Below, piece by piece: positions 23,668 through 59,200 of a DNA stretch of 64,000 nucleotides (its first letter is position 1; the number at the start of each line of letters is the position of its first letter). The position numbers were made by a program, and so were the translations under genes. Where the stretch lies: assembly GCA_009103225.1 (NCBI GenBank), contig RHPI01001616.1:436731-500730 (forward strand), read 5' to 3'. Under the pieces are notes generated by a model that was not told where the DNA came from, did not search any database, and saw nothing but the letters and a program-made list of their open reading frames with translations. This DNA comes from Chlorokybus atmophyticus (lineage: Eukaryota; Plantae; Mesostigma and Chlorokybus algae).

Positions 23668-25234
23668 ATGGACGAGAGGCGAGGAGAGGCGCCAGGGCCA
23701 GGGCCAGGGGAGGGGTAAGGGGGAGGGCGGCGGAGAAGGAGAGGGAGAGGGAGATGGAGAGGGAGAGGGAGAGGGAGAGGGAGAGGGGCAGGAGCAGGAG
23801 CAGGAGCAGGAGTAGAGGTAGGGGCAGGCGCAGGGCTAGGGTTGCTTTGAGAGCGCAGTGGCGCGGTTACGCTAGACATACGACTGACGTCAGCGACGCA
23901 GAGGGAGTGGGTGAGGGTGTTCCTAAGATTGCAGGCGGAGAACATGCACGACGCGCCACAATTGCTGAGGGATGAAGTTCTTCGCTCCCTCCCGGATCTA
24001 GACATGTCGCAGCTGCAACGAGACAGGGTGTCCGAGCATGACCTGATGGTTCGGATCTTGTTCTTGGAGAACAACCAGCCGGTGTGGCAGCATTTAACAT
24101 CATTCTACTCCGACCCTAGTGACTTGCTGGCAATCCATCCAAGCCCTATCTTCATCAAGGTGCGAGACCCCCCGGAAGCAGCGACGACGGCGCCACCACC
24201 AACACCACCACATGCAGGTTTGATCTGCGGTGTCAAGCATAGATGATGATGTCGTAGCCATCAAGTGCGTGTGACCTTAGTAGCGAATACTCTGCACATG
24301 TACTCTGCACCCAATGCTTGTTTGTCCGAGGCACTTACATTTTGGGTGGCTATCATGTATGCGGGCGTTGTGTTGGACATGTGTGATGAGTAAGAGTGTG
24401 CTTGAACCCTTGGCTGTCCAGGTTCCACACAGCTTGATACGCTGCTTCAGCTTGTGTCCAAGCTCGCCTCAAAACAAGATGAGTTTCGAACCGAGGTGCA
24501 GGAGTATCACAAGCAACAAACCCGAGACATGGAACTTACGCGCTCCCTTCTGCACATGACAAACATTTGAATACACCGAAGCCAACATGACTCGAAAAAG
24601 CGACCCAGGAGCCAAACGTTTTGCCAAGATTTTGAAGTCGGCGCATGGCGCGCTGGCTGAAAACGGACAGCAATGTCGCTGCTTGGTGACAAACGAGTGG
24701 TTTCCCAAGGAGACAGTGGTTGGAGGACACCTATTCAAGTACGCGTGGTGGCGAAATGTGGGTGACATGTTGGGGTTTGACGACATCAACGACACTCGGA
24801 ACGCACTCCCAATGTGGAAGCCGGTGGAGTGGGCGTTTGATACCGGTCAGCTCGTCATCATATATGAAGAGGCGAGAGATGCGTATATTGTGCACATTTT
24901 GAATCCCAGCATCAGAGACCGCAAGCTCATTGATCAGGCTTGCGAGTTGCCATATGACATCCGTCAGAGGGTGTCACCTGCTGCTGCGCGCCTGACATTC
25001 CAAGATCTTGAGGGTACAACGTTGGCATTTACACACGGGATTCTGCAACGCCCGTTCAAGCGCGCACTGTGTTTTCGAGCGCGCACAGCTCGTCGACAAG
25101 CACTCAAGAAAGGCTGGATAGCTGCGGATTGGGACTTCGAGGATTTCTACACCGAGGGTCTCAGCGTGAGAGCCAAGTTGAGCATGTGGTTCGAAAGCCG
25201 AGCGTCCGAGTCGCATGAAGGTGGCGAAGCTTGA
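23668..25234 (+). CDS. Crinkler(CR)-like protein: N-terminal header domain, coiled linker and C-terminal HNH (HNH_2-type) endonuclease; one frameshift in the linker
   Basis: Model: exons 23668-23714, 23859-24217 and 24422-25234. The header ends ...PIFIKVRDPP, followed by a helical linker (QLDTLLQLVSKLASKQDEF...). The nuclease has CLVT...VVGGHLFK...DINDTRNALPMWKPVEWAFDTGQL...FQDLEG..L.F...RPFKRAL. Linker and nuclease are 1 nt out of frame between 24557 and 24570. The nuclease frame is open from Met 24587 to TGA 25232-25234. Confidence 0.75.
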
Positions 25235-25299
25235 TGCCACGTACGTTTGCACCTGCAAGCTCTGCGAGTAGTGGATTGACGCCAATGTGTGGTGCATGC

Positions 25300-25850
25300 A
25301 TGTGTGTGTATATGTGTGTGCGCGCGCGCACGCGCAAGTGCATGCGTGCATGACTGCACACGACTGTGTATGTGTTCATTTGCTTCTTATGGTTAACGGT
25401 TGTGTATGATTTTTGTTTGTGAGCAGGCTTACGCGGCTTTGGCGTGCGGCGTGCGGCGTGCAGCGTGCGAGCATTACGCCAATGTATGCGCATGTGCTTG
25501 CTGTGATGAGCATAAGCCAGTATAACCCTGTGCATGCGTGTCTGCGCGCGTGTGTATGCCTTTTCGTCTCTGCCATATTTCGTTCAAGCCCGTGTTGCAA
25601 ACATGATGTCATGCAGGTTCTTGCTGCGTGCGTTGGGCTGCAATCAGCCGGGGCAGTGGATTTCCAGCCTTGAGTTGCGGAAGAGGTCATACCGTCTCTG
25701 CGGTTGCACGCTTCATGACGCTGCCGGCTGTCAAGGCGGCGCCGGCGGTTGAAAGGGCAACCTGCGTGCAAACTGCAGAACAGTAGTTTTCATTTAGCAC
25801 ATCATGTGCTCACACAATCTAGGGAAGTGAGCTTTCCAAGCAGCGCAGGC
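25300..25850 (+). repeat. Diverged, internally deleted duplicate of the 3' part of the SelU-like gene (source ~33750-35580)
   Basis: cag|GCTTACGCGGCTTTGGCG at 25427 matches exon 6 at 34553, and gcag|GTTCTTGCTGC at 25617 matches the last exon at 35320. Intron and 3' UTR similarity is also visible (ccagccttgag, atgtgctcacaca, the SECIS). Exons 7 and 8 are absent from the copy. Confidence 0.85.
25703..25762 (+). promoter_or_regulatory. SECIS element, copy 2 (short apical form)
   Basis: A-UGAC (25715-25719), helix gcugccggc/gccggcggu, apical AA, 3' UGAA (25750-25753) and outer helix guugc/gcaac. Confidence 0.7.
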
Positions 25851-30920: not shown

Positions 30921-31005
<85 letters not shown>

Positions 31006-31601
31006 NNNNNNNNNNNNNNNNNNNNNNNNNNNNNNNNNNNNNNNNNNNNNNNNNNNNNNNNNNNNNNNNNNNNNNNNNNNNNNNNNNNNNNNNNNNNNNN
31101 NNNNNNNNNNNNNNNNNNNNNNNNNNNNNNNNNNNNNNNNNNNNNNNNNNNNNNNNNNNNNNNNNNNNNNNNNNNNNNNNNNNNNNNNNNNNNNNNNNNN
31201 NNNNNNNNNNNNNNNNNNNNNNNNNNNNNNNNNNNNNNNNNNNNNNNNNNNNNNNNNNNNNNNNNNNNNNNNNNNNNNNNNNNNNNNNNNNNNNNNNNNN
31301 NNNNNNNNNNNNNNNNNNNNNNNNNNNNNNNNNNNNNNNNNNNNNNNNNNNNNNNNNNNNNNNNNNNNNNNNNNNNNNNNNNNNNNNNNNNNNNNNNNNN
31401 NNNNNNNNNNNNNNNNNNNNNNNNNNNNNNNNNNNNNNNNNNNNNNNNNNNNNNNNNNNNNNNNNNNNNNNNNNNNNNNNNNNNNNNNNNNNNNNNNNNN
31501 NNNNNNNNNNNNNNNNNNNNNNNNNNNNNNNNNNNNNNNNNNNNNNNNNNNNNNNNNNNNNNNNNNNNNNNNNNNNNNNNNNNNNNNNNNNNNNNNNNNN
31601 N
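30921..31601. repeat. (GA)n microsatellite followed by an assembly gap (N 31006-31601)
   Basis: GA run 30921-31005, then an N block. Confidence 0.95.
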
Positions 31602-32386
31602 TGAGGGGGGAGAGAGGAAGGATGACAGAAGATGAGAGGATGCGGCTGCTGAGAGTAGGCGGTGCATTGTGGCACACTCGCAGGCTGCAACTGCAAGAGG
31701 AAAAAGCCCTTACCAGCAGGTTACAAGCCTGTTTAATATGTGAATGATGCATCCAGCATGTACTCCACCCACACCCACACCCACTAGGCGCCGCAATACA
31801 CCTTGGAAAAAGGTGCTTCTTGCGCACCCTGTGCAAGCTGTCACCATCAGCTTGCCCAACTTGAACTCCCAGATGGTAGTGTGTCGACCACCACCAAGTT
31901 GGTGGTTACGACATCATGTCGTAACCAACATGTTCGCTTGCACTCAGCCCAACCCTGGTCCCCCTCCCCCTTTCATATGCAAGAGGTGTGAAAACATGTA
32001 GAGGCTGTTGCCAGGCAGGGAGCAGTCGCCTGCATGCAAATAACAAGGCACAACAGACGCAAGTCACGCAAAGGGCAAGGCGATATCCAGTATCAGCAAT
32101 CTACAGAGCACACCGTGACGGAGATACCTTGCAAGCTGCAGCCGCATCAACACATCAACTGATGGAGAAGAGCACGTTGTCGCATCATCAAGCTCACACG
32201 CTGTGCCTCGGGGAAGGGGCCCTTGATGTCATGCACAATAGTTGACTTGCACCACTTGCATGCACTCGCTAACTCCCAAGCAACCGTACGCACATATCCC
32301 GTCGGCGGCGGCGGCAGCGGCGGGGTAGTCGTCGCGGGCGTAGCCGGTGAGGTGGCCTGGAAGCTTCCTCCGGCCCGCCCCCCGGC

Positions 32387-35379
32387 ATGGGAGGCAAGTC
32401 GAAGGGGCGGCGGACCGCTGCGGAGGAGATCGCCGCAGCAGAGCAGGTGCGAGAGGGGTTGGTCCAATGGCTTGCTGGTGCCCTGATCTAGGGTTTTGTG
32501 CTGCACACGCTTGTTTACCGTTTGCTCTTGCTTATCTGTTTTCCTTGCTTGTGTCATTTTGACCGTGCTTCATGCTGTGCTTGGATCGGTTGCAATGCAC
32601 ACAGGCGTGTTTCCTTACTCGACTTCCTTGTGCATTGTAGCTCTGATGAAATGACTTATTTTGCGCACTGACTCGCACATTGCGTTGCTTAGCTGCTTGC
32701 CAGCGCTTGCTTGTGATCTGTCGGCTGGACTGCTCAACTCTACGTCAGAGCCTTGAGTCGTTTTGCTGTACAACTTCCAGTTCCAGTTGGCCTCACCCTG
32801 CTGCTGTATTAGGCACTTGACGACTTGGCCGCTGTGGAGGTTTTTGCAACTAATGGCAGCGCCGTCACTATGCGCGAGCTGTTAGGGTTGGGGTTGGAGT
32901 CAGGGCAAGCAGCAATGGGCACAAGTCAGCCACAGGCAAGTCGAACGTTGTGATACGTGTAGCTGAGTTTGTTGAAGTGCAATGTGGGCATTTACACCTG
33001 GGCCTTGCATGTGTACAGGGGAAAGTGCTGCTTGTGCTGCTGAGACACTTCGGATGACCCGCGTGGTACATACTCTCACGTGCACGATCGCTCGCATGCA
33101 TGCATGGAGTATGTTGCAAGTGCGCTTGAATCAGCATCCCAACATGCCAACGATGCTGGTGCATACACGTCTGCAATGCTCATCCACCAACCGATATGCC
33201 GCAAGCATGTTTCAGCTTGCGTGTATGTGTGCTGACAGTTTTCCTCTTTTGTCAGTTGGGACCGCGCGAGGTCGGTGCTTGCAATCAAGTCCCGCCTCGA
33301 CGCGGCCGGCGTGCGCCTTATAGCTGTAGGCGTCGGCACTGCGAAGGGAGCTGCCAAGTTTGCAGAAAAGGTACTATACCAATCAACGCATTCCGCCAAC
33401 GCCATCTGCATCATCACCAGGAGTATCATTGTTATTAATGTCGTCAATGTCATGGTTGTTGTTTCTGCCACAAAGCAGTACCTTTTGATAATATGATGGC
33501 TTGTTTTTGGGCTGTGCAGTGTCCCTTTCCGGAAGAGTTGTGCTTCTGCGACCCTCAAAGAAAGGTACCACCAGTATATCCATGTTGGGCAAGCTAACAG
33601 GTTGCATTGTAAATTGCAGAATATGATACTACTCGTCACCATGTGCCGCACATTCGCTCAATGTGTGTAAGCACACACTTAGCCAATGTGCGGCACACGT
33701 GCGCCTGCAAGCGTCTGTGCAAGCAAGAGCATGTGCACACTTGCGCGCATGTGTGTGTGCGCACGCGCGCATGCGTGCATGTCTGTTTGTTCATTGATTA
33801 TTTTACTGGCAACAGGTGTATGTGACCATTGAATGTGTGCAATCAAGCATGTGCATGCTCACGTGCGCGTGTTTGTGTGTCCGCGCGCGCGCGTGCACGT
33901 ATTTGTTTGTTCATTGATTATTTTACTGGCAACAGGTGTATGTGACCATTGAATGTGTGCAATCAAGCATGTGCATGCTCACGTGCGCGTGTTTGTGTGT
34001 CCGCGCGCGCGCGTGCATGTCTGTTTGTTCATTGATTATTTTACTGGCAACAGGTGTATGTGACCATTGAATGTGTGCAATCAAGCATGTGCATGCTCAC
34101 GTGCGCGTGTTTGTGTGTCCGCGCGCGCGCGTGCATGTCTGTTTGTTCATTGATTATTTTACTGGCAACAGGTGTATGTGACCATTGAATGTGTGCAATC
34201 AAGCATGTGCATGCTCACGTGCGCGTGTTTGTGTGTCCGCGCGCGCGCGTGCATGTCTGTTTGTTCATTGATTATTTTACTGGCAACAGGTGTATGTGAC
34301 CATTGAATGTGTGCAATCAAGCATGTGCATGCTCACGTGCGCGTGTTTGTGTGTCCGCGCGCGCATGCGTGCATGTCTGTTTGTTCATTGATTATTTTAC
34401 TGGCAACAGGTGTATGTGACCATTGAATGTGTGCAATCAAGCATGTGCATGCTCACGTGCGCGTGTTTGTGTGTCCGCGCGCGCGCGTGCACGTATTTGT
34501 TTGTTGGCTGATACATTACCATCAGCGTGTATGCGACTCAAAATGGGTGCAGGCTTACGCGGCTTTGGCGTTGTACGACAGCGTGCTGCGTTCTATGCGC
34601 TCCATTGTAAGTTCGCTTTACAATGCTCTGCTCCATTGTGAGTGCGCATTCACAAACCCATATACACAGTTGTCATAAACAGCAGTTATTCGTGGCGTGG
34701 TTATTGCCAACGTATGTACCAATCAATGCTTGGTACTGCAGCCGAAGGTTTTCTGCGGTTGTGGCGGGCGATGCATCGGCTTCCCCAAAGGGTTCTATTT
34801 TGTGACGCCTCCAAGCACAATGTCCACCATGCAGCAGGTACCACATCTAGAGTACTACCCCTGATGTCTTCTTTGACACAACACCAGCACATGTGGGCTC
34901 TATGTACTGCATTCACCACTGCATGCGTTGTTGTCCAGGACTGTGACACAATGTTGTGCATGCTTGGTACAGTGTTCCACGCAATGTCACGCCTTGGCAA
35001 GCATTGTTTTCAACAAATTTACAATCTTCTGCACTAACATCTTAGCACTTGTGCAGGGCGGAACCTTTGTGTTTCAAGGCAGGAACGTGTTGTATGCCCG
35101 GCGCGATGAGGAGACGGGGGATCATGCACCCTTAGAAGAAGTAAGAGTTGCCATACCCCTCTGCTCATGTGTGCACGCACATGTGCGCAAGTGAGTAGAT
35201 GTGTGTGCCCTTGCTGTGAGCACATGCAAGTATCCCCATGTGCATGTTTGTCTATATGCGTATATGCGTGTGTCTGTTGTTGGCGCACAAGCCCATGTTT
35301 TGAACACATTGTCGTGCAGGTTCTTGCTGCTTGCGTGGGGCCAGAAGTAGCTCGGCAATGGAGTGCCAGCCTTGAGTAG
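32387..35379 (+). CDS. SELENOU: Selenoprotein U-like / PRXL2 (AhpC-TSA_2) thioredoxin-fold protein with Sec in a UxxC motif, ~227 aa, 9 exons
   Basis: Exons 32387-32446, 32813-32935 (GC donor CAG|GCAAGT), 33019-33065, 33256-33370, 33520-33564, 34553-34606, 34742-34837, 35057-35140 and 35320-35379 total 684 nt. The sequence reads VLLVLLRHFG-UGA(33055-33057)-PACWDRAR...LDAAGVRLIAVGVGT...CPFPEELCFCDPQRKAYAAL...MQQGGTFVFQG..VLYARRDEETGDHAPLEEVL. The UGA occupies the first Cys position of the family's RHFGCxxC motif, and a SECIS follows the TAG stop. Confidence 0.9.
33781..34505. repeat. Minisatellite, six near-identical 118-120 bp units, inside intron 5 of the SelU-like gene
   Basis: The marker TTCATTGATTATTTTACTGGCAACAGGTGTATGTGACC recurs at about 33790, 33910, 34028, 34146, 34264 and 34384. 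Confidence 0.95.
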
Positions 35380-35427
35380 CGATGAGGTAGCACAATAAGA
35401 GCTAACACCATACGATAGTCTCTGCAG

Positions 35428-35512
35428 TCTGTACGCTCCATGACGCTGCCGGCTGTCAAAGATGGCGCTTTCATGCTGAGGGCGCAGGCGTCGGCGGTTG
35501 AGAGGGCAACCT
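35428..35512 (+). promoter_or_regulatory. SECIS element, copy 1 (form-2-like, with apical mini-stem) in the 3' UTR of the SelU-like gene
   Basis: A-UGAC (35440-35444), helix gcugccggc/gucggcggu, AAA (35458-35460), mini-stem gcgcuuu/agggcgc and 3' UGAG (35499-35502). It lies ~60 nt after the TAG stop. Confidence 0.85.
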
Positions 35513-36592
35513 GCGTGCAGAAGGCAGACCAGTATCACCCGTTCAGCAATTTATGTGCTCACACAGTGTTTAGGGAGTCCTTCTGACACTGTGCGATGCA
35601 TATGATGCGCAAAGTCTTGTCGTTGCACATACACCTCCACAAGTGACATCCACATATTGCCAACTGCTGCTGGTGCTCGCATGTTTGTCGGGGCAGTTGC
35701 GGTACATGATTACGTGCGCATGTGGTGCACTTGTGTGGATTGTCACATTGGGCTAGCGGCTTGTGTTGTTTCGCTTGCCACCGCACAGAGAGTTTGTGGG
35801 ACAAGTCATGCCAGTGCACTGTTATGCATATGAATGTGCAAGCATAGGTAAAGTACTCAACCAAGCTAAGCTCAGCTGCTCAGTATGCTGTTCTCGCGAG
35901 TGCATGGACACCCCGTCCCAACATCCTGTGTGTGCATGTATTCGGTTGTACGCGTGTGTGCGTGCACCTGTGCTTGTGCACGCCAGTGCGTGTGCTGTTA
36001 GTGTTTCAATGCTTTGTTGCCTGATGGTCTTGTGTGACTAAGCAGCCGAAACCTCCTTTCAGCTTCTCTGACGGATGCACCGTGCCTCTCCAATTGCTGC
36101 CCTTATCCCAACTCCAAACGCCACACATAGCACATCATATATTCTGTACACACTATGAAGCTGCCCTCAACTTGTGTTATGCCTAATGCTAAGGACTGAC
36201 AAACAGGGCAGAAATAAAACTTGAGTGCACCTCCCTCTCTCGCTAATCTGCTGTACCCAAGCCTGCAATGCCAGATGAGTCACATCTTAAGCCTCCAAGC
36301 ACTCACCATTTGGGTCTCGCCGCAACAAGACAACAGCACCCATCACTCCTCCTCCTCCGCGTGTTCCCTCGTTGCTACATGGCATGCTGACATGAGATCG
36401 ACCAAGGTAGCGACCTGTGGAGTTCACACGCACACGCACGCGCACGCACAGAGAGGCACAGAGGGCAGAGGCAGAGGCACGCACGCATGCACGCACACGT
36501 ATGCATGCACGCACTGTGCGTGCGGGGCACTTAGAGGGAGGGGCAGGTGCGTAGAAGTAGAGGCAGGCAGGTGCGCACACAGGCACATGCGC

Positions 36593-36594
<2 letters not shown>

Positions 36595-36647
<53 letters not shown>
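36595..36647. repeat. (GA)n microsatellite
   Basis: Pure GA run. Confidence 0.95.
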
Positions 36648-36649
<2 letters not shown>

Positions 36650-38542
36650 GCATACGCAGAGGCAGAGACAGGCAGGTGCGCACACGCAGGAGGGAAGCAT
36701 GCACTCAGTTGGATGCGCAGAGAAGATTTGCCTTGATGGTATAAGCGATGTCTGACCACAACAATGCACACCACTTACGTTGACTTTGGGGTGTGGACAT
36801 CAAGGATACCCTTCTTTGTTTTAAAAGCTGCGGCCGCTCAAGAAGGATGAAGACTTGCCTTGTCTGCACCCGTTGATGCAGAACCAATAAGCCTTGATCA
36901 TGTTGATCATGTCAAGACAGTCGTCATGGTGACTGCAAAGTGAGTAGTGTCAAGATTGAAACAGATGTTGGCCTACTAACATGCTGTATGGCGCCATATG
37001 TGATGTCATCAATAACAAATTGCAGGCCACCAGGGACGACGTTCTTCACATCCACCGCTTAGTCTCGCACAGCTCCAACAGAGGGTGCAGGTGGTAGTAG
37101 TGATGATGTCCCACCACAGCTGTCCTGCGAGAACTCCACTTGCTGTGAATGCCCGCACAACCAAAATGCCCCTCGCCTCCTGCTCCGCCTTCGCCTCTAT
37201 CTGCTCGCTCTCCTTCAGAGGGTAAGCTTTACTCAATGTGTGCACGGGGCGCATGCATGGAGTGGTTGTGCAATGGGTTTGCACAGTCTAGCTTTTCTTC
37301 TTCTTACAGCAATTGCCTGCTCAGGACACGCAGCAGAATGTAATAGTCGTCGTAGCAGTCTTGCACGCTGGTGCAACGTTGGGTTAACCCTGCACCTCAC
37401 ATCCTTTACCTCCCTCTGCTCTGCTCTGCTATGTCGCGGTGGATACGGGGCTAATGTTTCGCCTCACCCACACCTGCCTGCTGCTGCTGCTGCTTGCATT
37501 GCCCAAGCTCTCACTTTTAAGGCGCCTAACTACGTGCATCACTTACCATTATTGCACGTAGCTAGCCCCTGATGCATATCTATGAGTGCGATGTGGTGGT
37601 CTTTGTAATGCGTTGGGCTGTACAGGCAAGGCAACCGCCTTGCCAGTACAGCCCAACATACAACCCGCGTGGCGTGCCGGTTGTACTGTTTGGCACACCT
37701 TCGTTGAAAACATAAGACCAAAAGCAGCAGCAACGGAATCAGCAGCAGCAGCAACAACCTCATCATCAACCACCACCACCACCACATGTGCTGCCTAAAT
37801 CAAGCAGTTGCAAGTGTTGCAGATTGCCAGGCGTGTGCGCGATGCACGTGTATTGATGCACATGTAGCTGACACGTTTGTCTACCAGCAGCTTGTGACTG
37901 CTATAGTAGATGACCTGTAAAAGTACCTCTCAAGTTGCAAAACTCTATCTTGCTTCGTGAATCAGACAACTATGTGTGGCAAGCTCATGCATCACCAATG
38001 CACGTGCAACAAGAGCTGGTGCATGCACCTGAAGAAGCTGCGACTGCAGCACACTACACCATGTAAACGATGCACAGCCATGATGTAGGCAAGGCAAATG
38101 AATCAAGTCTCATCAAATATCAGCTGCAAAGGGCTGATCGTAGTCTCATGCTAACTGACACTGACACTGACACTGACACTGACACTCCTTGTTGCAACAA
38201 AATGCCATTGCTATCGACACAACGTAGCATGCCAGCAAGCAACAATTGCATCACTTTCAACTCCAAGCCAGCATCGAGTCACCAATAGCTCCAATGTCAC
38301 ATAGCCTAACCCTGATCAACAGATCTAGCACACTACACGTAATGACCCAACCTCCAACCTTCAGTAATGCAACGCTATTCCACAATCAAATGTGACAACT
38401 GCGGCGACTGATAATTTTACTTCTAATAAATACCAACCAATACCAGCAAGCACCATGCAGACAACCATGCCACCCACCTCTCTCACTCTCACCTCTTCTC
38501 TCACCCTCTCACCCTCTCTCTCACTCTCTCGCACTTCTCTGC

Positions 38543-43854: not shown

Positions 43855-44052
43855 ATACCTTTCTCGGCCTTTTGGCTAAGATCAAGTGTAGTATCTGTTC
43901 TTATCAGCTTAATATCTGATACGTGGCCCATCGGGTCACAATGATATTAAACTAATTTGTTTGGGTGGGGGTCTCGTATGGGTGGGCTTGCTCACCCGAG
44001 GCTCCCGGCGTCGCCTCAGCATTGCACTGCTGCAGAGGAGGGCGCAGCCCAC
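43855..44052 (+). ncRNA. U2: U2 spliceosomal snRNA
   Basis: Starts with ATACCTTTCTCGGCCTTTTGGCTAAGATCAAGTGTAGTATCTGTTCTT, which includes the branch-point recognition GTGTAGTA. Stem IIa/IIb, an Sm-site region, stem III and stem IV with the ATTGCAC loop follow. Confidence 0.97.
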
Positions 44053-56244: not shown

Positions 56245-59200
56245 ATGATGACGGGTGTGCCGAAGCCGCTGCACCAGCTGCTGAAGGATGCCGGCACCGC
56301 CAAGGACGCGTTGCGGGGGTGGACGGAGTGGAGGCATGCGCTGTACCCGCTCATCAAACCTCACATTAACACCAGCGGCAAGGACGAACCCAACAGCAAC
56401 AAGGATGTCGTGAGCATGCCACAGACTAAACCAGACGGATACCCCCCTCACAGCATCAAAGATATCATGAGCCTGTCAATGTCTAAACGCGAAGAAGTCT
56501 ACCGGCCTCCCACGGTACGAGTCCGTGCCTGTGTGCACGCTGATCCACGTACTCACTTGTTTTTCCTGCAGAAGTTCGAAGACTGGAGGCGTGAGGTGGT
56601 CAAGTACGGTGAGCTGGCGCAGGTGGCGTACGACGGCCTGCTGTCAACCAACGTGTACAGCGTCAAGTTTGGCGGATGCCGCTTCGACAAGAACACCGAC
56701 TTCTCTGCTGATAAACTCGACTACCTTACCTCACTCGGACCAGACTCAAAAAACTACGAGGTGTGTGTGTGTGTGTGTGTGTGTGCACACAAGGGTGTGA
56801 AACTGAGTGACACACACGCGCGGATCTGCCTGAGAGAAAATGAGATCGCGCATGTCAATGTATGTGCATGTGTGTGCACGCGTTTAATGTGGCCAACAAC
56901 GTTACCCTTGCCAGGTCGTGAACTTGTTGTACGCGGATTCTGGGTTTTATGACTTGATTGAGCAAGCGGGTGAGCGGAAGCCGAACTACATGGGTTACGT
57001 TGCCAAGGAGCTTAAGCCCAAGGGCGATGACGTCGAGGTGGTCATTGCATGGCGCGGGACCATCACGCGCAGCGAGTGGTTCTCTAACGTCAAATTCCCC
57101 CAGGTGCGAGCAAGAATGACTGCATGTGTGTGCGTGTGTGTGTGCTTGCGTGTGTGTGTGCGCGCGAAATGCGTGTGTGTTCATGTGCATTTGCACGTGA
57201 TGCTCAATGTTGGTGTGCATGGGCATATCTGTGCCAGAGTTCAAATATTGGATACAGTAAAAAGGCCTGCATCCAACATCCAACATGTGATTTCAGGTGA
57301 TATGGAACGATGGCAAGCTTGTTGTGACGGCCCCCAAAACTCGTCTTAGGCTGAACCCCTTGGAGGTGTTGGGTGTGAAGTGGTTCCTTCTCGCTTTCGG
57401 CGGGTTGTCCCTCTTCAAGTGGCACTCGTCGTTGTTGTTGCCCGGCGCCCTCTCATCCTTGTTGGCAGCGACACCGTGGGGTGCGGTGGCATTTGTGTCT
57501 TTTGCTCTCGCTGTCGCGCAAGGCGTGCGCACAACACTCAACTCAAGGGAGTATTTGCTGCTAACTGGCGCGAAGGATGACAACGATGACAACAAGGATG
57601 ATGATGGGAAGAAGACGTCGTCGAGCATGCTGTGGAAGGATGTGCAAAAATGGCCTGGGTTGGTAGGGCAGTGGGCATGGTTCTTTGCCAAAACGCTGAG
57701 TCTCACCCAGATCAGCGCCGACGCACGCGTCGAGTATGGTATGTGTATTAATCCAACATGTGTTCATTTGTTCATGTGTATGTGTGTGTTAACAACAGGA
57801 TGCTATTGCCATGGGCGCAGGGTTCAAGGAGGTGTATACAGAAGCCGACCCGGATGTCTTATTGAAGGCGGGTGAACCGGGCACTCCTCGCATGCAAGTG
57901 TACCGCACCCTGGTAGACCTTGCCAAAAAGGTGGGGGCAATTGATATTGCTGTGTCCCCACATGTCACAAGTGCACACGTACACATTCCACCTGCATGTC
58001 CACCACACCAACACAGTACCATCGCCTTAAAACAGTTGGAAGGAGACGGGTTGAGGATCGGGCGCATCGTTACCACCGGCCACTCGCTGGGAGGCGCGTT
58101 GGCTTCGCTCAACGCGTACGACCTCAGCACCACTCTCAATGGCAGTGTGAATGAGACAACATCAACAACAACAACAACAACAACAACAACGAAAGCTTCG
58201 AAGGATCCTGAGGTTGAGCTGTTGGAGAACATCAACCTCCTGCGTGAACACTTGCAGCGCACGGGACTGCAAGTGCCTATCTCTGCGTGCACGTTCGCGT
58301 CGCCGAGGACGGGCGACGTCCGCTTCGCCAGCGCGTTTGGAGATTACGTGAAGCCGTTCGAAGGGGGGCTGGCTGCCAACTTTTGGTTCTGGTTTGATCA
58401 GACCATCGGCTTCGCGGTCTGGTTCGCTGTGCTCTCGTCCATTCTTACCGGCTCAGTCGGGCTTAGTTGGGTACGCATGTGTGCGTGCGTGCGTGCGTGT
58501 CAAGTGCATGTAACGCAATGACTTGCTAAGTAAAACTGTACTACTTGCAGCAGCCACCACTGTGCCAACTATCAACTGTTGTCATGTCACTTTTAGGCTG
58601 ATGCTGGAGTACGCTCTGCTTCGGCTCTCTTGGCATGGGCCGCGCTGCCGTACGCGCGGCAGCTGGTGTCCTCACTCACGAGCAACAAGAAGTCTTTATC
58701 TTCATCGGAGAAGCCGTTGACCGAGCTGAAGGCAAGGTCACATTGACAACATAGCCAAACTCTCAAAGAATGTAGTCCTGGTTGACTGAGACAACCTGCC
58801 TGAATTAATGCTTTCCCCGTGCTTCTCCAGATGCTGCGGGTCGTGCACGTCCATGACTTGGTACCAAAGGTACTTACCTGCGCTGTTTTGTGTGTACATG
58901 ACGCAGTGCTGTGGTATGTTGTGTTGCTGCGTGTGTGTACATACAACATGTGAGTTGCCTGACAACGTGTTGTTGTGTTCCTTCTTCACAGATACCTAGA
59001 GGCTGGCTGACAATCCTGAGCCCGTAAGCAGCAGTATGAGTCTCATCGCAGAACAACAAACAATATCGCGCACTCGCCACATGCACACATGAGCCTGTGA
59101 GTGCCCTCCACTGCTACTGAATGAATCACAGGCTCATGGAGTTATCTTGACATGCAGGTACCGACATGCGGGGACGCTGCTTGAGCGCGACATGTATCCC

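Follow-up and report, generated by a model that had tools for sequence, protein, structure and literature searches.

The 64,000-nucleotide stretch analysed here (the window; positions 436,731 to 500,730 of the forward strand of contig RHPI01001616.1, assembly GCA_009103225.1, Chlorokybus atmophyticus) carries on its plus strand, at 32387-35379, a gene of the selenoprotein U family (SelU/PRXL2). Its nine exons comprise 684 nt, equal to 227 sense codons and a TAG stop, and the ATG at 32387 is the earliest start codon downstream of an in-frame stop. In frame with this ATG lies a TGA at 33055-57, preceded by GKVLLVLLRHFG and followed by P-A-C-W, which gives the motif RHFG-U-PAC-W if U, selenocysteine (Sec), is placed at the TGA. 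The codon for the Cys of this motif, Cys77, is divided by the GT-AG intron 3 into TG (33064-65) and T (33256), and beyond the TGA the spliced frame stays open for 153 sense codons until the TAG at 35377-79.

Exon structure and the TGA in the transcript

RNA data came from six runs, belonging to two studies or bearing the same organism label, four of which were aligned to 32000-37500. Run X1 gives a 1192-nt contig on 32127-35627 with essentially zero differences from the genome and with all eight introns skipped, and run X2, from a separate study, gives contigs over exons 1-4 and 7-9 with the same joints as in X1. These contigs represent complementary DNA (cDNA), because their joints have GT..AG ends. 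The joint between exons 2 and 3 skips 83 nt and leaves five letters ambiguous, and the sole placement with recognised ends is 32935/33019 (GC..AG); the resulting GC-AG intron (32936-33018) has the donor GCAAGT and RNA joints in four runs. Over 33015-33064, the exon that bears the TGA, the X2 contig shows 0 differences from the genome, and no alternative letter is reported by X1 or X2 at 33055-33057. Genome-identical cDNA contigs thus run across the codon, and the TGA is therefore present in the mature mRNA. A path around the TGA is unsupported by any RNA contig of the four runs.

The public model of the gene, Chrsp187S02919 (JGI Chlat1; EukProt EP00898 P002008, Chlorokybus atmophyticus), is a protein of 229 residues. 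When rebuilt from the window it differs from the RNA-based model at two junctions only: where the latter has the GC donor at 32935/36 and the acceptor at 33255/56, the public model has a GT donor at 32924/25 and an acceptor at 33238/39. This puts exon 3 one base out of phase, and the frame is recovered by six residues encoded in the intron; with its junctions so altered the model therefore has no stop, yet the RHFG-U-PAC motif is lost. The RNA joints, which skip 83 and 190 nt, contradict the 94 and 173 nt of the public model. Chrsp187S02919 can accordingly be corrected, its active site having been lost because of two splice sites at odds with the RNA. A first-pass annotation, made from the genomic letters, had anticipated that standard annotation would mishandle this gene, as it indeed does by shifting the frame across exon 3 and so avoiding the TGA. 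That annotation had also located the in-frame TGA, the RHFG-U-PAC-W motif, the intron-split Cys codon, the long open frame after the TGA (153 codons by our count) and an AUGA 60 nt past the stop, all at coordinates that proved right, and had asked whether cDNA would confirm the TGA; the X1 and X2 contigs match the genome at 33055 and do not read TGC or TGT.

Runs X3 and X6 carry a diverged version of the gene, in which ~4-11% of exon positions differ and the exon structure is unchanged. Chlorokybus has been described as a species complex with divergence dated to 24-76 million years ago (Irisarri et al. 2021, PMC8611356), and X3 and X6 probably represent other species of this complex. The listed differences of X3 past the TGA affect 8 codons, 5 of them synonymously when the codons are read by eye, and this pattern of substitution suggests purifying selection 3' of the TGA. 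Coordinates are collected in Table 1.

Table 1. Features of the SelU locus and of its upstream duplicate (window coordinates; UTR, untranslated region; SECIS, selenocysteine insertion sequence)
Feature	Position	Strand	Remarks
5' UTR	32127..32386	+	minimum extent; run X1 transcript contig begins at 32127
exon 1, coding part	32387..32446	+	20 codons, GT donor; RNA joint 32446/32813 in four runs
exon 2	32813..32935	+	41 codons; followed by GC-AG intron 32936-33018
exon 3	33019..33065	+	GKVLLVLLRHFG, TGA, P, A and the two leading bases of the Cys codon; sequence and run X2 contig
in-frame TGA, codon 74, proposed selenocysteine (U of UxxC)	33055..33057	+	genome sequence and cDNA contigs
exon 4	33256..33370	+	finishes Cys77 (TG, then T), then W and the beginning of the PF13911 domain; RNA joint 33065/33256
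exon 5	33520..33564	+	15 codons; RNA joints; identical to public model Chrsp187S02919
exon 6	34553..34606	+	18 codons; RNA joints
exon 7	34742..34837	+	32 codons; RNA joints
exon 8	35057..35140	+	28 codons, GGTFVF...TGDH motif, C-terminal end of PF13911; RNA joints
exon 9, coding part	35320..35379	+	TAG stop 35377-79; sequence and RNA
3' UTR	35380..35627	+	248 nt; contigs of runs X1 and X2 end at 35622-35627
type-2 SECIS-like hairpin	35428..35521	+	minimum free energy folds, duplex energy, rarity in window, conservation
partial, internally deleted duplicate of SelU 3' half	25292..25816	+	blastn, MAFFT, fold

Intron 5 is largely a 118-bp tandem repeat (33764-34491, 6.1 copies, 97% matches by Tandem Repeats Finder), which is spliced out of the RNA contigs. 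An assembly gap, seen as a run of N at ~30950-31600 with GA/CT dinucleotide repeats on both sides, lies ~0.8 kb 5' of the SelU transcript start. Elsewhere in the window there is a U2 spliceosomal small nuclear RNA gene (43855-44052, plus strand, 163 bits against Rfam RF00004).

Protein family and the hairpin in the 3' UTR

As a stand-in for the part of the protein after the TGA, residues 80-229 of the public model, which are identical to exons 4-9, served in the searches. They match Pfam PF13911 (AhpC-TSA_2) with 59.5 bits (cut-off 27; E=5e-16) over profile positions 6-114 of 114, and exon 4 alone (E=3.6e-4) and exon 8 alone (profile positions 92-114) align to the same profile below threshold but in the correct profile order. 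The PF13911 domain lies wholly 3' of the UGA, with no in-frame ATG able to start it, and the motif LLVLLRHFG-U-PAC-W, encoded by exons 3 and 4, stands ~9 residues ahead of the Pfam match, the piece before the TGA being only 12 residues long. The family includes SELENOU1/PRXL2A, SELENOU2/PRXL2C and SELENOU3/PRXL2B (bioRxiv 10.1101/2025.05.29.656587; PMC3473315). The three PF13911 clusters of the ESM Atlas nearest to the post-TGA part, all with a score of 0.94, are a chordate C9orf21 (= PRXL2C) cluster, which is the nearest named one and has PF13911 in 100% of its members, a diatom cluster and a chlorophyte cluster; this tie between the animal cluster and those of diatoms and chlorophytes hints that the C-terminal motif, which the first-pass annotation had taken to be of a land-plant subfamily type, is not confined to land plants. 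Human PRXL2C resembles the Chlorokybus protein in an RHF-x-C...C start and in having QQGGT close to its C-terminus. PRXL2C/C9orf21/AAED1 (SELENOU2) has the Cys form in vertebrates, and Sec forms occur in some invertebrates (PMC3473315).

Beyond the family profile few relatives were retrieved. A word-index protein search with public-model residues 80-229 had the public model itself as its sole match at both E<=0.001 and E<=10, and the same kind of search with the stop-free stretch around exon 2 had no match. Exon 4 used as a query against a representative protein library retrieved the public model (100% identical) and three unrelated long proteins, and a sequence search of the PDB with exon 4 and with public-model residues 80-229 found no related solved structure. 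By these sequence comparisons the SelU protein is divergent. No second SelU gene was found in the window by tblastn with each exon; the only parts that occur again are exon 9 and the beginning of exon 6, at 25.4-25.7 kb. The N-terminus is short, which points to a cytosolic protein; N-myristoylation of its MGGKSKG was considered and rejected, position 6 being at odds with the usual motif.

The 3' UTR contains a SECIS-like hairpin (RNAfold, 35425-35524). Helix I pairs 35428-36 with 35513-21 over 9 bp and is followed by an internal loop with AUGA at 35440-43, exactly 60 nt past the stop, and the 3' core UGAG opposite it at 35499-502; the 3' side of this loop also carries a 10-nt mini-hairpin. Helix II (35445-57 with 35487-98) has 12 bp, one bulge and a duplex energy of ~-18 kcal/mol, and beyond it come an unpaired AAA (35458-60) and an extra helix III of 9 bp (35465-73 with 35477-85). 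The layout matches that of type-2 SECIS elements, for which the published core is UGAN/KGAW (PMC3753652): helix I, the internal loop, the AUGA/GA kink-turn core, helix II, the unpaired AAA and helix III are held in common, whereas the Chlorokybus element differs in its UGAG core, the 14-nt gap between AUGA and AAA, the 9-bp helix III and the mini-hairpin.

A crude scan for the SECIS pattern and duplex on the two strands of the window (128 kb) returned three loci, namely the site at 35440, a paralogous copy at 25715 and a weak site at 56245, and because the pattern is so rare in the window a chance match within the 248-nt 3' UTR is unlikely (roughly 0.005). Run X3 has 11 listed differences from the genome in the 47 nt that separate the stop from the element and 1 in the 79 nt that follow (Fisher p=7e-5; p=0.016 with all five unlisted X3 differences placed inside the element), and that lone change, 35473 A>G, leaves helix III closed by G-U in place of A-U. 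Between the paralogous copy and its parent the SECIS arms are 91% identical, as against 54-81% for the flanks, and the changes in the helices of the copy all keep or improve pairing (U-G to C-G, G-U to G-C, and a C deletion together with G>A). Rarity in the window, conservation in X3 and conservation in the paralogous copy argue, at the level of sequence, that the hairpin is a real SECIS-like element. The pattern (AUGA..AA..GA) at 56245-56306 on the plus strand was rejected, since it folds no better than shuffles and is probably due to chance.

Decoding of the UGA codon

We consider it highly probable that the locus is the Chlorokybus SelU/PRXL2 (AhpC-TSA_2, thioredoxin-fold) selenoprotein gene, with UGA codon 74 read as Sec. 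In the proposed mechanism the UGA of the mature mRNA would stand at the leading position of a UxxC redox motif, and the type-2 SECIS, ~520 nt 3' of the UGA in the spliced mRNA, would recruit SBP2 and eEFSec with Sec-tRNA, so that the UGA would be decoded as selenocysteine to give a protein of 227 residues. Sec74 and Cys77 would lie at the N-terminus of the first helix of the thioredoxin fold. On the model of the CxxC family members, Sec74 may attack an oxidised substrate (peroxide, endoperoxide or disulfide), Cys77 would resolve the intermediate as a selenenylsulfide, and thioredoxin or glutathione would reduce the selenenylsulfide.

Several observations weigh against this interpretation. The support for Sec at codon 74 lies at the level of sequence and RNA, and the conservation of the TGA across the Chlorokybus species represented by X3 and X6 is one that we infer. 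We equate U74 with the catalytic Cys of the family by assumption, from the motif and from the PRXL2A/B/C sequences, PF13911 itself beginning a few residues after the motif. The hairpin, too, is not wholly typical: the 14 nt from AUGA to AAA are near the upper limit of what is usual, helix III with its 9 bp is longer than normal, the fold z-score is only -1.7, and the 3' core UGAG departs from KGAW (PMC3753652). The Rfam SECIS models give no match in the whole window at the gathering threshold, nor in 2 kb, a 121-nt slice and the paralogous copy at E<=10.

Three other explanations were weighed, two of which draw on some of these points. Were the UGA a true stop, the gene would be recently inactivated or truncated, it would yield only an N-terminal peptide of 73 residues, and the hairpin would be fortuitous, a view that accords with the silence of the Rfam SECIS models, with a 3' core that departs from KGAW and with the kinds of data that speak for a full-length protein, which are sequence and RNA. 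An entire PF13911 domain nevertheless follows the UGA, intact over 153 codons, the orthologue of the diverged isolate keeps the exon structure with mostly synonymous changes downstream, two independent comparisons show the hairpin to be much better conserved than its flanks, and the TGA falls exactly at the presumed CxxC position in an organism that has Sec machinery (PMC6627142), so that we regard a true stop as very improbable. Similarly improbable in our judgement is selenium-free read-through, in which a near-cognate tRNA would insert Trp, Cys or Arg at the UGA to make a full-length protein that is not a selenoprotein; here the indirect route by which Sec insertion is deduced and a SECIS partly off consensus would count in its favour, but it leaves the conserved SECIS-shaped element without a role, Sec forms at exactly the same position of the family are common in algae (PMC7539508), and this alga has the Sec machinery (PMC6627142).

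Least credible of all is that Chrsp187S02919 is correct and that the alternative sites 32924/25 and 33238/39 carry the frame past the TGA through a local shift, so that a Sec-free protein of 229 residues is made. Both sites do have GT/AG ends, and the resulting coding sequence is open and equals the public protein exactly; however, neither junction is present in any RNA contig of the four runs, and the conserved strand and the UxxC motif are swapped for frame-shifted and intron-derived residues.

Reading codon 74 as Sec places the gene in a setting that is in large part known. The window itself contains no tRNA genes, tRNA-Sec included (ARAGORN). Chlorokybus eEFSec, PSTK, SBP2, SecS and SPS were found in the 1KP transcriptome, four of the five also in the genome, and three selenoproteins were reported for this alga in the same study, which found Sec machinery in every streptophyte-algal class and placed its loss in the embryophyte ancestor (Liang et al. 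2019, PMC6627142). The SelU gene may already be one of these three. Sec-SELENOU is among the most widespread algal selenoproteins, with reports from over half of 36 algal genomes (PMC7539508). SelU had earlier been described from Ostreococcus and Thalassiosira, and from the streptophyte Mesostigma three selenoproteins were known (Lobanov et al. 2007, PMC2375036); the protein family and the use of selenium in these algae are thus already known. The first-pass annotation had identified the gene as a Sec-type (UxxC) AhpC-TSA_2/SelU/PRXL2 gene with its own SECIS-like element in the 3' UTR, and this part of its interpretation holds, given the PF13911 match of 59.5 bits and the hairpin at 35428-35521. 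The significance that it attached to the gene was overstated, since the timing of selenoprotein loss in streptophytes, on which the gene was thought to bear, had already been addressed with the same genome (Liang et al. 2019, PMC6627142).

With the Sec-containing SelU proteins of algae (Chlamydomonas, Ostreococcus, diatoms), fish and birds, the Chlorokybus gene has in common the PF13911 thioredoxin-fold domain, a SECIS-like element in the 3' UTR and a single proposed Sec, which would stand at the leading position of UxxC after a hydrophobic strand. It differs from them in its host, a subaerial and early-diverging streptophyte alga with only three reported selenoproteins (PMC6627142), in a divergent sequence with no relative sharing 5-residue words at E<=10, and in a SECIS-like hairpin whose helix III is long and whose 3' core reads UGAG. 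The AhpC-TSA_2 proteins of land plants belong to the same Pfam family but have Cys rather than Sec and no SECIS, land plants keeping only Cys homologues and no Sec machinery (PMC2375036, PMC6627142).

An upstream duplicate of the SelU 3' end

The paralogous SECIS belongs to the partial duplicate listed in Table 1. In order, the duplicate consists of an intron-5-like repeat unit (25292-25339), the exon-6 acceptor with the 19 nt that come next (23/23 identical) and, past an internal deletion, the last part of intron 8, a copy of exon 9 with a 1-nt insertion, the 3' UTR and the SECIS; the portion from exon 6 onward occupies 25423-25816. The SECIS of the duplicate is without helix III, and its AUGA, at 25715, lies 10 kb upstream of its counterpart in the SelU gene.

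Ahead of the duplicate, on the same strand, is an open reading frame of 215 codons (24587-25234) with a Pfam HNH_2 match (24.3 bits) that ends in a TGA at 25232-34, with the duplicate SECIS ~480 nt behind. The TGA is followed by TGC CAC and then by a strong phase-0 GTACGT donor (25240/41), which fits in frame the acceptor of the exon-9 copy (25616/17), likewise in phase 0, and a predicted 25240/25617 splice would add 18 codons, up to a TGA at 25671-73 that stands 42 nt ahead of the copied SECIS. If this splice is used, an unrelated HNH_2 gene would have acquired its last exon and a functional SECIS from the SelU gene, a possibility raised by the sequence arrangement that we think rather doubtful but worth recording.

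For the organism, a subaerial streptophyte alga credited with only three selenoproteins, the SelU gene is a well-supported addition, while the date of Sec loss on the way to land plants is unchanged by it. The duplicate is a more interesting lead than the SelU gene itself and, if the transfer to the HNH_2 gene is true, would offer a concrete route by which new selenoproteins may arise through duplication of a SECIS.

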